Source of the DNA: Ascoidea asiatica JCM 7603
Lineage: Eukaryota; Fungi; Ascomycota
Direction of reading: 5' to 3'
DNA length: 64,000 nt
Assembly (NCBI GenBank): GCA_001600695.1
Contig: BCKQ01000013.1
Location: 126,045-190,044, forward strand
Shown here: piece by piece, positions 16,258 to 57,637 of the stretch
How positions within the stretch are numbered: the stretch's first letter is position 1
How the letters are laid out: every line of letters begins with the position of its first letter
Translations under genes and position numbers: made by a program
Notes under the pieces: generated by a model
What the model was told of the DNA's origin: nothing
Seen by the model: the letters and a program-made list of their open reading frames with translations, nothing else
Databases searched by the model: none

Positions 16258-16565
16258 AAATAAACATTTATCAACAACAAACAAATAAACAAAGCAGTAA
16301 ACAAACAAATATTTCATTATTTCAATTTGTAGTACAAAGAAGAAGACCCGTGGAATTGGATTCAAACCCGCACGAATTCCATTTTATTTTATTTTATTTT
16401 ATTTTATTTTATTTTGTTTTGTTTTGTTTTGTTTTATTTAAACAGTTGTTAAAAACAAGAACAGGAAAGATAAAAGCAATTGATAAAGAAGTGAAGAAGT
16501 GAAGAAGTGAAGAAGTAATGAAGTAATAATACATTTATGAAAGATAGGAGATAAGATATAGGAAA

Positions 16566-17669
16566 ATGACAGAATTAATAAGTAATTTAAATAATAATTA
16601 TAAAGAATACTTGGATATAATCTCAGATATTGAAAATGAGAATGAAAGGGATGTAGATAATAATAATAATAAAGATTCAATAGCATTTTTAAATACAATA
16701 ATTTGTGAAAGTATTGAAAAAGATATTGAATTTATAAGAAAAGAAAGTATAAAAAGTAATTCAAATTATTTAAAAATAAATGATATTAAAAAAAATAATA
16801 GAGATTCATTAATTATTAATGAATTTGAAAGAAAAAAAAGAAATAAGAATTATAATATTAATATTAATATTAATAGAAATTCAATTGGTTCTATAAATTC
16901 AATTGAAAATAATGATATAATTATTAATAATAATAATAATAATAATAATGGTAATAATAATACTACTATTGTTCATAATAATAATAATAATAATAATAAT
17001 AGTATAGGTAATATTGGAATTGATTTAGATAGTAATGATATAAGTAAATTAAGATTACCTAAAGAGAATATAAATAAATTATCTTATGAAATAGATAATA
17101 AGAAATTTGAGAATAATTTAATATTATTAGAAACCAAACAACAAGAAGAACAAGAACAAGAACAAGAACAAGAACAAGAACAAGAACAAAAAGATAAAGA
17201 TAAAGAAAATGGAATAGATGAAAATGAAGTTATGGAAGTGAAAGATAAAGAAAAAGAAGATAAAGATGAATTATCTATATTAAGAAAAAGATTATTAAAT
17301 AATTCCAATCATCATAAATATGATAACGAAGAAGGAGAAGAAGAAGGAGAAAATAATTTAGATAAAATTAATGAATATCATGATAATTTACAAAATACAA
17401 TTATAAATGAAATGATTGAATTTGTTGGAGATTTAAAAAAAAATATAAATAAATTTAATGATAATTTAAAAGAAGATAATGAAAAAATTATTAATAATAA
17501 TAAAATTATTAAAAATACTAAAAATAAATTATTAAATATTTCAAATAGATTAATTAAATTTAATAAAAGTGATAAAATTTCAATTTTTTTCACAATTAAA
17601 GTTATTTTAAGTATAATTATTGGTACAATTTTAATTTTTTTAATTATTACTATTTTTAGAAGATTTTAA
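16566..17669 (+). CDS. USE1: ER Qc-SNARE Use1/Slt1-like tail-anchored protein
   Basis: LRKRLL motif, then a SNARE-type coiled coil (HDNLQNTIINEMIEFVGDLKKN...FNDNLKED) and a C-terminal TM ending IFRRF. Confidence 0.72.
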   Translation: MTELISNLNNNYKEYLDIISDIENENERDVDNNNNKDSIAFLNTIICESIEKDIEFIRKESIKSNSNYLKINDIKKNNRDSLIINEFERKKRNKNYNINININRNSIGSINSIENNDIIINNNNNNNNGNNNTTIVHNNNNNNNNSIGNIGIDLDSNDISKLRLPKENINKLSYEIDNKKFENNLILLETKQQEEQEQEQEQEQEQEQKDKDKENGIDENEVMEVKDKEKEDKDELSILRKRLLNNSNHHKYDNEEGEEEGENNLDKINEYHDNLQNTIINEMIEFVGDLKKNINKFNDNLKEDNEKIINNNKIIKNTKNKLLNISNRLIKFNKSDKISIFFTIKVILSIIIGTILIFLIITIFRRF

Positions 17670-18051: not shown

Positions 18052-18424
18052 GAATAATAAATAAACAACTAACAAATAAAAAATATAACCTTCAATTTTT
18101 TACAAAAGGGTCAGAAGTTTTTTCAAAGCGCAAATTGTAACAAGAAGTTTTGCACCTTGCGCCATCACCAAAACAAACCAGAATTTATAAATTAAGGAAT
18201 TGTCTGAATAAAGTGCAATTATTTCATCATATGTGTAAAAACTTGGAAGGTCATACTGAAAAAAAAGAAGAAGAAGAAGAAGAAGTAAAATATATTAAAA
18301 GAAAAGAAGGATTCGAGCTCTATTTATACTCCAGCAGAGAGAAGCCAAGAAGATTTAAAAAAGCCAACAGGGTAACAGTGACACTGCAATTATCACAATT
18401 CTTTTCAGGGATCAGAAATATACT

Positions 18425-18580
18425 TGAGACCATAAATAGGGAAGTCCTAGGTGAGACCAGGTGCAGGGTACTTCTTTACGAGACCATAAACATGGATCTC
18501 ATTTTATGAGACCAATAACATGGTAGCTGTTAATGAGACCAATATCATGGTACTTGTTGCAATGAAACCAATCACACGGG
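18425..18580 (+). repeat. Six degenerate 27-29-bp tandem units, consensus TGAGACCA-N4-CA(T/G)GG-N10-12
   Basis: GAGACCA at 18426, 18453, 18480, 18508 and 18535; GAAACCA at 18564. Confidence 0.9.
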
Positions 18581-19470
18581 TTTTCTTTTTCTATTTCTGT
18601 GATTACTCGATTGTTTACCCAATGCGGCAAAACATTCCACGTCAGAAGAACAATGATAAAACACACACACGAAGCAACGGGAGATATTGTTCGTGAACAA
18701 GATCAAGTGTTCGTTTGCTATTGACAGTGCACGAGATGTCTTTGAAGCTTCCAGGGTGTCGGAGCCGGATATGTTTGACCGATGTAGTTAAAGGTCTCAG
18801 TTTGACACATAAGAACTGTACACGAACAGAAACTGAGTTCTTATCGAACAAGTCCAATGTTTGCTAGTTGTTTACTCCCTGACCGACTGAGACAAGGAGC
18901 GTTGCACTTTCACCAGCACCAAACCCACCAAGAACAACAACCACAACCACAACAACTGCCTTAGCTTCTTCTTCTTCTTCTTCTTCTTCGTCTTCTGCTT
19001 CTTCTTCTCTTTATCAATGGATCTAAAATATACTACTTTTCTCTGCTTACTTTACTACTTTTACCCTTTCAAGTAATTTATTCAATCTATCACTCATATC
19101 TATCACTTACTCACTCAAATAACTTAAAACTATTCAATCATTCAATCATTCAATCATTCAATCAATCAATCAAATATAATAATATCAATAATAAATTGTA
19201 CTCATTTTTGTTTTGAATTATTAATTATTATTGGTTTATTCAAATTTATTTACTCCATATTCAATAATTTATATTTTATTCATTTATTCATTTATTTTTT
19301 TCAATTTTTTTACACTCATTTTTAAATTTAATTAATAATGATAATATCTTATTATCATTTAATATATTAATTATTTCAAAAAAAGAAGAGAAAAATAACT
19401 AATTAAATTTATATATTATATGAAAACATATAAGATAATATAATATAATATATGTTATTGATAAATAATA

Positions 19471-19516
19471 ATGAGTAATCAAAAAAGATCACTTTCAATA
19501 TCTTCTTTAAATAATG

Positions 19517-19549
<33 letters not shown>

Positions 19550-19939
19550 TGGCAAATACAAATACAAATACAAAAGATAATCAAGATAATCAAGATAATC
19601 AAGATAATAAAGAAAATAAAGAAAATAAAGAATCAAAAGATAATAAAGATAATAAAGACAATAATGATCCAAATCAACCAAGAAAAAAAAGACAATATAG
19701 TAGAGATGGTTGTAAAGAATGTAAAAGAAGAAAATTAAAATGTGATGAAGGTAAACCTGATTGTTGGCAATGTAAACATTTAAATAAAAAATGTATTTAT
19801 GAAAAATCAATAAAATTTAGTGATTCAAGAGCTTTTACTATAAATTCAAATACAAATAATTTAATTAATATAAATTCAAAAAAATTTAATTTAAACGCCA
19901 ATACAAATACCAATACTAATTCCAACATTAGCGCCAATG

Positions 19940-19975
<36 letters not shown>

Positions 19976-20532
19976 TTAATATTAATATTAATAATAATAA
20001 TAATAATAAATCTTTAACTTTAGGTTTACAAAATTTAAAGAAAAAAAATCCATTATTAATTAAAAAAAAATTAAATTCAAAATTAATTAAAAATTCATTA
20101 TCAAAAGTTTTAAATAAATCACTTTCATCTTCAAATTCATCTTCTAGTAATAATTCAATTTCATTAAAAAAATCAATTTCAAAATCAAATATAAAACAAT
20201 CAAAACAATCAATAAAACAATCAATAACCTCAAATATATCAAATAATATATCAAATGAAACATCTAATGAAATACCTAATGAAATACCTAATAAAATACC
20301 TAATGATATAACTAAAGATTTAAATAATCAATTAGAAAATCATTTAGAAAATTTAAATTCTTCACCATCTTCTTCTTCAACTTCTTTAGAAAAAAATTTA
20401 TTAAATAATGCAAATACTTTAACTGATAATTTAAATGATTTAATAAGTTCAGATATTAATAATTATATCTTTAATCTTAATCAATATTCTGATAATTATC
20501 CATCTCATTCAAATAACTTAACTAATAATAAT

Positions 20533-20563
<31 letters not shown>

Positions 20564-20944
20564 TTGATCCTTTAAATAATATTAATCCAATCACTAATAA
20601 CAACAATAATAACAACAATAATAATCATTTTAATTCAAATTTAAATCATTTTTCAAATAATAATCAAAATAATATTCAAAATACCAATAATAATCAATAT
20701 AATTTTAATAATCTGCAAAATATTAATTATAATCAAAATAATCATTATCAAAATAATAATATACAATCAAATTATAATAATCAATCAAATATAATTTATG
20801 ATAATCAAAATATTAATTCAAATATTAATTCAAATATTCAATCAAATATTAATTCAAATAATTTTAATCAAAATTTTAATAATTTTCCACATTCTTTCAA
20901 TTTTCAACATAATAATAACACTATTAATAATAATCAAATCAATC

Positions 20945-20986
<42 letters not shown>

Positions 20987-21453
20987 GTAATCCCCCAAAT
21001 ATATATAATCATTATCAACAACAAATTTCAGATATCAGAAATACTTCAAATTCAAATACTAATAACATTATCAATCCTTTAAATAAAAATCCTGTTCAAG
21101 ACAATAATCATAATAATCAAAATATTAATAATATAAATAATGAAAATATTAATCATAATAATCCAGGAATGAATTTTGAAATTGATGGTTTTTTAAAAGA
21201 ATTATTATTTTTACCTCCAATAAATAATTCTTCATTACCAATACAAAAATCAAATAATTCAAATAGTGAAGTAAATTCTATAATTGATAATGATTCTCCA
21301 TTTCCTGATTATAATAATTTAAATTTTGAATATATTATTAAAAGTGATGCAAATTTAACTTCAAATTTTAGTTTAAATAATTCTCCAAATATAAATTATT
21401 CTAAAACAAATTCTTCAATAAATACTTTTCCAAATAATAAAAATAATATTAAT

Positions 21454-21492
<39 letters not shown>

Positions 21493-23790
21493 TTAAAAAG
21501 TAATTTAAATTATAATTCTAATAATCCATCTATTTCTAATAATTCAAATAATATTGAACCACCAAAATCTCCAATATTAAATAATGATAAAGAAATTTTA
21601 ATTAAAGTTTCTTCATGTTTTGATGCAACTGGTAATGAAAATGTTGGTAATTCTCTTGATAAATTATATATACTTGATATTAATAATAATTTAATTGATT
21701 TATCACTTGTTTCTCAAGGTAATAATGAAATTAGTTCAAAACCAATAGTTTTAAAATCAATTTTAAAATCTGTACCTTTAACAATTTTTACAAAAATTAA
21801 AAATTTAAATACAAATCATTTAAAATATTTACAAAAATTTTATGATGAAGTTAGTATAAAATATTTTCCATTAGCAATTTCAAAAAGTTATTTAAATCCA
21901 AAATTATTCTTAGAAAATAAATTAGATGATTATAATAAATTATTATCTTTATCAAATTCTGATTTAAATTCTGATTTAAATTCAAGTGATAATGAATACA
22001 ATGAAAATAATTCTTTAGAATATTCAATAAATGAAAAAAAAAAAATTGAAGAAGAAAATTTATTTAAAGAACAAAATCCAATAAGAGATTTACTTTTAAT
22101 TCAAGCAAAAAATTGTCCATATTTATTAAGTTCACTTTTAGCAATTACTGCAAGATTAGAATTTTTAAAAACAAATGATATGAGAGATGAATTATATAGA
22201 AAAAATTATTTAGCAACATGTTTAAAAACTTTAAATGATAATTTTAAAGTTCAAAGTTCAAGAAATTCAATAAATAGTGGACATTCAAATTTTGATGATA
22301 AAGAAATTGAATTTAATTTAAAAAAAGAAAATGATAATTCAATTAATATAACAACTTTAAAAGAAGAAAATAATGAAAATGATAAAAATGATAAAGATAA
22401 TAAAATTAATAAAAATAATAAAAATAATAATGAAGATAAAGAACAAGAAAGAGCTAGAAAAACTTTAGGTACAATAACTATGAAAGGAATGACAAATGAA
22501 TCTTCAAAACTTAAAATGATAAGAAATATTGATTCATTAATTGTAACAGCATTAATGTTAACAATAGATTCAACAATTGTTCAATATAATGGAGCTTGGA
22601 GAAATTATTTAAGAAATGCAATGAGTTTATTAGTTAATTATTTAAAATATTTTAATAGTAAAGCATCAAAGAAAAATAAAAGATTATCACCAATGTTAAC
22701 ATTTGCAAAATTAATGTTTACATCAGTTGAAACATTAGCATATTTAACAAATGATTCAGATGAACAATCAATAACATCATCATCAACAATTGATTTACTT
22801 TTAAATTCATTTAATGATCTTGAAAAAGAAAATGATGATAATAAAGATTTTAAAAATAATATTTTTGAAAATAAAACATATGGTAAAACAGAATTATTAT
22901 ATTTAAAAAAAATGGGATTAATATCATTAGATGGATATAATATTTTTCTTGGATATTCAAATGATATATTATTATTATTTAAACAAATTTTAATGATAAT
23001 TAAATTAAGATCAAAAAATAATTTAAAAAATTTATATGATCAAACAGATATGGTACTTCATTTAATAAAATTATTAAAAAAAGCCAAAAATTATTATTTT
23101 GCATCAAAAAATATAATTATTGAAGAAAATAATGAATTTCATCCATTTTATAATAATAATAATAATGATAATAATAATGATAATAATAATGATAATGATG
23201 AAAAGAAAATGGAAATTAAAATTCCAATATCATGTTATGGATTTGGTAATAATAAAATTGGAAAATTTTTATATTCATGGTATGATCTTTCACATCAATT
23301 ACATGTAAATGCTGCAACTATAAAAATATATAAATTAAAAGGATTTTTTGGAATTCCAACAAATAATCCATTAATTCAAGAAGTTGTTTATAAATCTATA
23401 AAATTATTATTTTTTTTAGAAATTGAAAATGAAATTGAAAATGAAATTGAAGATGAAAATGAAAAAGAACTAAAATTTTCAATATCGAAAGAACATAAAA
23501 ATAAAATTTTTAAAAAAATTTGTAATGATTATAGATTAACAATGATTCATTGGCCATTAATAATAATTGGATTAAATTGTATAAAAGAAAGAGATCAAAA
23601 GATTATTGAATTTTTTTTTGAATGTTTAATTGAAATGGGAGTTGGTAGTTCAGAATCTTCAATAAAAAAATTAAAAAAAGTTTGGAAAGTTTATAATGAT
23701 AATAAATTAGGTGATATAAATTTGAATGAAAAAGAAGAAAATATTGAAAAAGAAGTTAGTGGTGAATTTGATTTTATACCATTTTTTTAA
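19471..23790 (+). CDS. Zn(II)2Cys6 transcription factor, Lys14 family
   Basis: KRQYSRDGCKECKRRKLKCDEGKPDCWQCKHLNKKC closely resembles the Lys14 zinc cluster. Also has a C-terminal fungal TF domain (IHWPLIIIG) ending DFIPFF. The exact paralog is uncertain. Confidence 0.85.
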
Positions 23791-24840
23791 AATTATTTAT
23801 TTTAGTTTTAGTCATTGTACATTTTATTTTATTTTATTTTATTTTATTTTATTTTTTTAAGAAACATTAGATTTTTTTTATTTCTTGTTATTGTTATTGT
23901 TATTTTCTTTTATTCTATTATTGTTTTATTGTTAATTTATTTATTCTTTTATTGTTATTGTTATTGTTATTGTTATATTGTTATATTGTTATTTTTTTAT
24001 ATAATTCTCTCATTACTTCTTAGTTATTATTAAATCTTTTTCATTCTATTATTTTCATAATCAATTATCTCCACTTTTTAAATTATTAAAAGACTTAAAT
24101 AATTTTTTTTTTTTCCTTTTATTCGAGATTGTAATTTATTAATTTCTTATTGTTGATTCTTATTAAATTTTGAGGTTTTTTACCCAATTCGGACAAATGA
24201 AATTTTCAAATTTCAAATATGTACGTGGGTGTGTTGTAATGTAGTCCCAGAGTTGTGGTCTCTGATCAAATTCAATTTATTAATTGTTGATAAAAATTAA
24301 AAAAAATTAAAAAAAAATTACAAAAAAACAATTAACGTTTTTTTTTCAGGGGTCTGAGATTTCACCTCGGAGGTTTGACGCCGGATAAACCCCGGTTAAA
24401 TTTAAAAGACTTAAAGAATTTATACCCGAGTAATAACAGTAACATGTGTAATGAATATGATGAATATCCGAGTCATGGAGTAAGATATAATAGAATTATA
24501 ATAATCTGAGTTAAGAATTAGTATGTAAGATATGAATATTTAAAATAGGTTAAATGAAAGTTTGAAACCGTTATAAATAACCATATAAGGTTACAATTTA
24601 ATATTTAATAATTTATTGAAAAAATTGACTTTGAATTGGAATTGAAATTAAAATTAAAATTAAAAATTAAATGGTAATCAAATAATAATAGTTTGATAAT
24701 TTAATGGTATTTAATATTTTTAAACGCTCCGTCGACATTTTTCAAATTTAAATATCAGATCAAATTTAAAGTAAGTAATTATTTAGACTCTAGATTTAAA
24801 TTTGAATTTTGACTCTAAAGTAAAGTAATTCATGAAAATA

Positions 24841-47724: not shown

Positions 47725-48064
47725 TTAGGGCTCTAAAGAACATTAAATTTATTCTAGATCTATAATCCGGGTAACTTCATTACTTATCTTCTTTTTCATT
47801 AACACATGAAATCTTCAGATCTAAAATAAACCTAATTAATTTACCTCATTGATTTACCTCATTACTTGAAACTAGAAAAAAAATTAAAGAAATTTTTAAC
47901 AAATAAAAACGTAATCATTGTCATTTTTAAAACTACCTCAATTATGGTCTCTATTTTTTTATTTATTTTTCAAAATATTTTTTTTTTTTTTCAATCCCGT
48001 GCCTGCATTATATTTTTTCAAATCTAAAAACCAAAAAAAAAAAAATAATATATTAAAATTTTCA
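47725..48064 (+). promoter_or_regulatory. Ribi-type promoter of DBP3 (Tbf1, Reb1, RRPE motifs)
   Basis: TTAGGGC 47725, CCGGGTAA 47767, AAAATTTTCA 48055 (reverse RRPE). Confidence 0.55.
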
Positions 48065-56666: not shown

Positions 56667-57637
56667 CAAAGAAACCAGGTTACCCTCCGCCGGAAAAACA
56701 ATCCCACCGGCGCGCAAGTTCGAGAGCCGGAGCTTGCGCTTTACCAAAATATGACCCGGTGCAGGAATATGTCCGGACAGGTGTCATAAAGTGACACACA
56801 TCCTAGATCTGTGGCACCCATATCTTGCTATCATGGCCCTATGTCCTAGAAAGTGCCGTGACCATTGTGAGACCATCTACATGGACATCAAATACAGACC
56901 CGTATCACTGGTTTTGGAAAGAGGCTGTGTGTTGACGCCGTCCACTGCCGTCTGCAGCTCCACCCGAACCCAGCGAACGCCACGGACCGATCCAGCCAAT
57001 CAGCCTCTGCCCACTGCTCTAGCTGCTAAGTGAACTAGTTCCGTTGTTCTGCTGGTGGCGAAGAGCAAACCTCACTCTTTCTCACTCTCTCACTCTCTTT
57101 CTCTCTTTCTCTCACGCCAATTCAATCTGATTTTTATTATGATGTGAAGCTGTTTGATATGTATTATATTGTGTATGTATGTATGTATGTATGTATCTAT
57201 CTATCTATGGTGGGTTATCCTGTTAACTGTTGTTAATTCTCTCTTAACTAGCAAATATTATTTATTTCCATTTCCATTTCCATTTCCATTTAAAATTCAA
57301 TAAGATTTCAATAAAAAAATTATTAAAAAAATTTAAAATACCTAATTTATTCAATATATTTATCAAAACAACAATATTCAATTCAAATTTTTATTAATCA
57401 TTTAAATACTCTTCATTTTCCTCTTTATTTTATTCCATTTCATTTTCAATTTCAATTTCAATTTCTCTTTTTTTTTTGTTTTTTTTTTCATTCAATATCT
57501 ATCTATCTATCTATCTATCTCTCTATCTTCTTTAATTCTCTTTTCTATATTCAATTTCACTTATTATAATCTTATTTTATCAATTCATTTTTTTTTATTA
57601 TTATCCTATATTATATTATATTATATTTCTTTAAAAA

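Follow-up and report, generated by a model that had tools for sequence, protein, structure and literature searches.

A tripartite motif with phased arrays in Ascoidea asiatica, found at the divergent snR45 promoter and in many unrelated promoters, as the putative site of a general regulatory factor

Between the USE1 gene of Ascoidea asiatica (16566..17669, + strand) and a Zn2Cys6/Fungal_trans_2 gene of the Lys14 family (19471..23790, + strand) lies a GC-rich island in which one short motif recurs six times in the same orientation and at nearly constant distance. What kind of element is this, and is it peculiar to its locus? A sequence-only reading of the window, by which we mean the whole stretch of 64,000 nucleotides that was analysed, had described two boxes with a fixed gap and freely diverging spacers, and had taken them for an iteron-like array. 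The six units are real: counted from the G of GAGACC or GAAACC they start at 18426, 18453, 18480, 18508, 18535 and 18564, at spacings of 27, 27, 28, 27 and 29 bp, and when the 880 bp around them were dinucleotide-shuffled 2000 times, no shuffle held more than two matches to the pattern. The spacers are less free than was thought, as positions 18-23 read W-N-Y-Y-Y-T, with a T at position 23 in all six units. Since the same T is found in 78 of 80 array units, each site must be counted as 23 bp long (GAGACCA-N7-GG-N6-T) and the array as ending at 18586. All six units lie on the + strand, at 18426..18448 (PWM 26.6), 18453..18475 (29.2), 18480..18502 (25.8), 18508..18530 (27.0), 18535..18557 (29.7) and, for the GAAACC variant that closes the array, 18564..18586 (22.4). 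The 885-1046 bp that separate them from the ATG of the Lys14-family gene (19471) agree with the 0.9-1.05 kb given earlier; the idea that successive units alternate between faces of the helix must be given up, as a 28-bp period amounts to ~2.67 turns, or a step of ~120 degrees per unit.

The motif extends far beyond this island. When the A. asiatica assembly (20.3 Mb in 71 scaffolds) was scanned with the pattern first read from the six units, slightly relaxed, 307 matches were found against 14 in the reversed control; the exact core GAGACCA-N7-GG gave 700 against 21, and the 23-bp pattern, a relaxed core with T23, gave 1,078 against 74, an enrichment that speaks strongly for the motif. The two boxes and their fixed gap were thus correctly perceived from the six units, whereas the 'CA' assigned to the second box is not invariant genome-wide and falls outside the core. 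The 7-nt gap is strict: a gap of 6 nt was met 62 times (19 in the control), mostly at the same sites ending in GGG, and one of 9 nt 27 times (control 26). Where both GG positions lack a G, GAGACCA shows no enrichment (422 against 493), so both boxes are needed. T23 is present in 546 of the 700 exact sites, and the matrix of the 80 array units adds W at position 18 and pyrimidines at 20-22. The site is accordingly tripartite, with GAGACCA, GG at +15/16 and T at +23, the boxes being about 85-100% fixed and the other positions near background. Because its right part often reads GG-G-TCT, the whole forms a pseudo-palindrome with a one-base offset, which might be read by a dimer or a two-domain protein. 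Sites occur equally on both strands and are mostly single, with one exact core per 29 kb; scaffold C1 also holds 250 kb (C1:2312339-2562302) devoid of an exact core site, the largest such gap on that scaffold, with variant sites inside it.

The motif had been judged to be none of the familiar yeast ones, and by inspection it does differ from the Abf1, Reb1, Rap1 and Mcm1 consensi, and likewise from that of Tbf1. Coincidence with the BsaI site and resemblance to the tRNA B-box were both dropped, since the sites are dispersed and carry additional fixed positions, and since the GTTC part of the B-box is missing. The portion of the literature that was covered holds no account of the motif, of Ascoidea motifs or telomeres, or of a comparable new general regulatory factor (GRF). 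A paper on Pdc2 gives no comparable consensus, and from RP promoters of the sister species A. rubescens the Tbf1 motif alone was extracted (PMC6173580).

The arrangement of the sites relative to one another is as regular as the motif itself. There are 102 same-strand pairs at distances of 20-46 bp, against none in the control, and among the matches listed 78 of 100 direct pairs are spaced by 27-29 bp; a smaller group at 35-37 bp is not significantly periodic, and longer direct distances peak at 54-59 bp, echoing the 27-29-bp spacing. The matches listed fall into 18 isolated pairs and 19 arrays, the latter with three to seven units each, and within any one array the units are always in direct orientation. 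The array at 18426 is therefore one among about 37 phased loci, alongside ~1,000 sites in unrelated promoters, so that what endures of the iteron-like array is a set of putative sites for an uncharacterised DNA-binding protein, neither a one-off nor tied to the Lys14-family gene. The longest array seen has seven units and lies upstream of PDS5 (C13:209557-209738). It is 65 kb from the window array and among those most similar to it.

Inverted pairs are fewer than direct ones and have minima of their own. Head-to-head gaps between the 16-bp cores fall at 9-11, 14, 18-22 and 27-29 bp and tail-to-tail gaps at 14-15 and 23-25 bp; each set shows helical phasing, with a period of 9-10 bp (p <= 0.005), and no pair lies below the respective minimum (p about 0.003 and 0.004). 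The tail-to-tail minimum of 14 bp corresponds to two 7-bp tails, each ending at T23, that just touch, and the head-to-head minimum of 9-11 bp to 4-5 bp on each side. A tail of 7 bp and a head of 4-5 bp add up to 11-12 bp, which is the gap in direct arrays, and a single footprint of ~28 bp therefore explains all three minima. We infer from this fit, which is the strongest argument available, that one protein probably occupies neighbouring sites simultaneously.

Where the sites lie suggests what such a protein might do. About 200 kb, comprising the window, the 19 arrays and 24 single sites, entered the positional statistics. All ten PWM matches in the window are intergenic, although at least 63% of it is coding, and 23 of the 24 single sites sampled are intergenic, with one inside a reading frame. 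Besides the six units, the window has a single GAATCC-variant site in the USE1 promoter (16341..16363, - strand), one between the Lys14-family and PUF genes (24240..24262, -), one upstream of a DEAD-box helicase gene (47929..47951, -) and one in the divergent gap between a Zn-cluster TF and a RING/PHD gene (56869..56891, +). Of the 17 arrays with both neighbours visible, none occupies a convergent gap; in the window 5 of the 16 gaps are convergent, a small baseline. The flanking genes are unrelated (PGK1, PDS5, NSE4, UTP25, RTC4, MetRS, a permease, mitochondrial peptidases), and the combination of promoter-type gaps with unrelated neighbours is the pattern of a general factor and not of a regulon. 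Flank skews of the arrays were uninformative.

At the locus in question, the transcript nearest to the array is on the opposite strand: an snR45 C/D-box snoRNA gene (18087..18254, - strand) whose 5' end is 172 bp from unit 1, recognised at full model length with Rfam RF01266 at 47.6 bits (E 0.00027), short of that family's gathering score of 80. A likely TATA box, TATAAATA (18321..18328, -), was read from the sequence 67 bp upstream of snR45. With this box and the array both upstream of snR45 and the Lys14-family gene forming the other arm, the interval is best described as a divergent snR45/TF promoter. The remaining arrays have no link to snoRNAs, and only tRNAs lie near two of them.

The explanation that we consider probable is that the six units are putative sites of one abundant sequence-specific protein acting as a GRF. 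In S. cerevisiae, Abf1, Reb1 and Rap1 are such factors; the Abf1 site is bipartite with a fixed gap, and GRF sites are typical upstream of snoRNA genes. The sites of yeast GRFs number from hundreds up to about a thousand, spread over promoters of unrelated genes, and the repertoire of these factors turns over between lineages (PMC2897762). The A. asiatica motif, like those of Abf1, Reb1, Rap1, Cbf1 and Tbf1, is present in many promoters of unrelated genes, but its sequence matches none of them and its site is longer (23 bp, tripartite). The motif acts like a GRF site and is outside any named GRF motif family. Furthermore, these factors are not known to have close-packed 27-29-bp arrays of up to seven units in many unrelated promoters. 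In a sample of 196 kb, picked around motif matches and so not a random set of promoters, the Abf1, Reb1, Tbf1 and Rap1 consensi showed no clear enrichment, that of Abf1 even being depleted (1 against 11.7 in shuffled sequence), while Cbf1 sites were enriched, often near the new motif; the factor may thus fill a vacant role. A Pfam search of the genome for Abf1, run without a positive control, returned no match, and two weak Reb1-like matches are present in the genome.

Were this reading correct, an abundant factor would bind the 23-bp site and open promoters as Abf1 or Reb1 do, probably by contacting two major grooves about one turn apart together with a third patch. Neighbouring molecules would co-occupy their sites and probably stabilise one another in direct orientation, and at some promoters selection would have brought the sites as near to one another as is permitted, at a distance that is probably cooperative. 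A filled array of 160 bp, longer than a nucleosome core, could then displace a nucleosome and keep the divergent snR45/TF promoter open and active. Such close packing has a parallel in plasmid iterons and parC-type arrays, which are likewise direct and phased in a way that suggests cooperative loading; they differ in that the arrays described here stand in eukaryotic chromosomal promoters, at many loci and with no adjacent initiator or partition gene. The result would be a precise, high-information motif with a built-in estimate of its footprint, belonging to a factor that is probably among the chief organisers of promoters in a yeast lineage so far unstudied. It makes GRF turnover directly testable, and in the strict lattices of 27-29 bp, together with the phased inverted pairs, steric and cooperative packing would have left an unusually clear trace in the genome. 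The obscurity of the organism and the weak conservation in its sister species limit the reach of these points.

Conservation was followed mainly in A. rubescens, whose PGK1 is sister to that of A. asiatica (SH-aLRT 96) and whose gene order around the window is shared. Its snR45 stands at the syntenic place (stretch L087, 11384-11555), and yet the USE1-snR45-TF interval has no array despite the synteny, so that comparison of the orthologous region went against the element; nor are the single sites of the window kept there. The six-unit array in the PGK1 promoter of A. asiatica corresponds in A. rubescens to two sites, an exact one and an inverted variant. A scan of 77 kb from the sister species yielded one exact match and six relaxed ones, against 1.4 in shuffled sequence but four in the reversed control, and a de novo search for gapped words recovered simple repeats only. 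The motif is not enriched in the PGK1 flanks of S. crataegensis. The top SNF2 matches and the second Use1 match came from distant, non-syntenic yeasts without the motif, and a homolog search with the C-terminus of the Lys14-family protein found no match. On these comparisons of sequence, the arrays look lineage-specific.

Which protein might bind the sites is a narrower question, and here the genome offers candidates only. Three CENP-B/Abp1-like HTH proteins are encoded (a probable Pdc2 orthologue and two frames of 1,245 and 546 aa), as are AFT/FAR1 (MULE-type) proteins, among them a 712-aa protein with two tandem AFT/FAR1 DNA-binding modules (scaffold C3; stretch L092:995-3133), the promoter of whose gene contains no motif site. 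The sites of the pogo-derived double-HTH family, namely the CENP-B box and those of S. pombe Abp1/Cbh, have two boxes 11 bp apart, a YGG(G) end and an A/T-rich linker, a geometry that resembles the motif; nothing links any of these transposase-derived proteins, the three HTH proteins included, to it. The CENP-B box itself (TTCG-N4-A-N2-CGGG) is not enriched, with 6 matches against 24 in the control. A more ambitious form of the GRF reading, which is conceivable although we would rather doubt it, has a lineage-specific replacement GRF, possibly derived from a transposase of CENP-B/Abp1 or MULE/AFT type, that polymerises head to tail on 28-bp lattices, the long arrays being chromosome elements of a class apart (boundaries, anchors or strong origins) in addition to ~1,000 single promoter sites.

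The main rival to a general regulatory factor is the origin recognition complex, with the motif as an ORC(-Cdc6) recognition site, the sites as origins and the arrays as strong origins. The density of exact cores is origin-like, and origins, like the motif sites, are intergenic. Yarrowia lipolytica has at least 556 origins, and the part of that report that was seen describes an ORC-Cdc6 consensus that is likewise tripartite, with a C/CC at the centre of its roughly 27 bp, intergenic and of similar density (bioRxiv 10.64898/2026.03.10.710760). As given in that part, the Y. lipolytica consensus nevertheless has other bases and is far more degenerate, with no phased head-to-tail arrays described, and the bases of the A. 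asiatica motif match neither known origin consensus. The agreement in density also holds for the exact core only, relaxed matches exceeding 1,000, and the sites on C1 are spaced randomly (CV 1.15, against 0.98 at random) and not at the roughly even 30-40 kb expected of origins. Motif sites in general avoid convergent gaps and favour promoters. In Orc4, the stretch corresponding to the S. cerevisiae insertion helix is shortened and without the F/Y residues present there. The packing of ORC rings every 28 bp looks sterically unlikely. We consider this explanation unlikely on balance; if the binder were ORC, the motif would represent a further independent solution to sequence-specific origins. 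The Orc4 of A. asiatica has 1,428 aa (scaffold C22; stretch L093:219-4505), against 529 aa in S. cerevisiae, with an N-terminal extension of about 900 aa that is charged and of low complexity and has no obvious AT-hooks.

An equally unlikely alternative separates the two kinds of site, so that the single ones are ordinary promoter sites and the ~19 long arrays have a role in chromosome structure, as a boundary, a polar fork barrier, or an SMC or nuclear-anchor site, and do not activate the adjacent genes. The invariably direct orientation, the frequency of about one long array per Mb and the lack of a function shared by the neighbouring genes would suit such a role. The continuum from single site through pair to seven-unit array does not, and neither do the promoter-type gaps, the position a few hundred bp from a gene start or the absence of the array at the syntenic place in A. 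rubescens. A point centromere was rejected, as three to four arrays on C1 and two, 65 kb apart, on C13 argue against one. No 5.8S rRNA gene or rDNA was found in the assembly, which may lack the rDNA unit.

Transposon ends typically carry phased direct repeats, and transposase-derived domains are encoded in this genome, which could make the units subterminal transposase-binding repeats of a DNA transposon or MITE. Against a mobile element stands the lack of any homology between loci beyond the units. Neither a transposase nor a terminal inverted repeat was seen next to the 19 arrays that were examined, and the sites, about 1,000 of them, are mostly single, so that we hold this origin to be very improbable. 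Still less credible is that the array is a functionless 28-bp minisatellite in decay. At variable positions, similarity between units is slightly higher within arrays (0.42) than between them (0.39, p 0.002), and two adjacent units at C13:209.6 kb are near-identical, from which it appears that local duplication probably seeds some arrays; conservation is nonetheless specific to columns and not a uniform decay, dozens of unlinked loci share the boxes and the period, phasing extends to inverted pairs, and the counts across the genome refute such an origin. Duplication may supply arrays, with selection acting on the boxes.

As improbable as the minisatellite is either of the alternatives that the sequence-only reading itself had ranked low, a repeat/spacer small-RNA locus or an interstitial telomere relic, since the sites are equal on both strands and mostly single, no credible Rfam match falls on the array, and its marginal fold (z-score -2.14, reached by 4 of 200 shuffles) is expected of pseudo-palindromic units. 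The telomere variant is refuted by the genome's own telomere repeat, a 17-mer unrelated to the unit. This repeat, CAACTGTCATCCAACAT on the C-rich strand, does not appear in the literature searched; it was read at six scaffold starts, those of C2, C4, C5, C9, C14 and C15.
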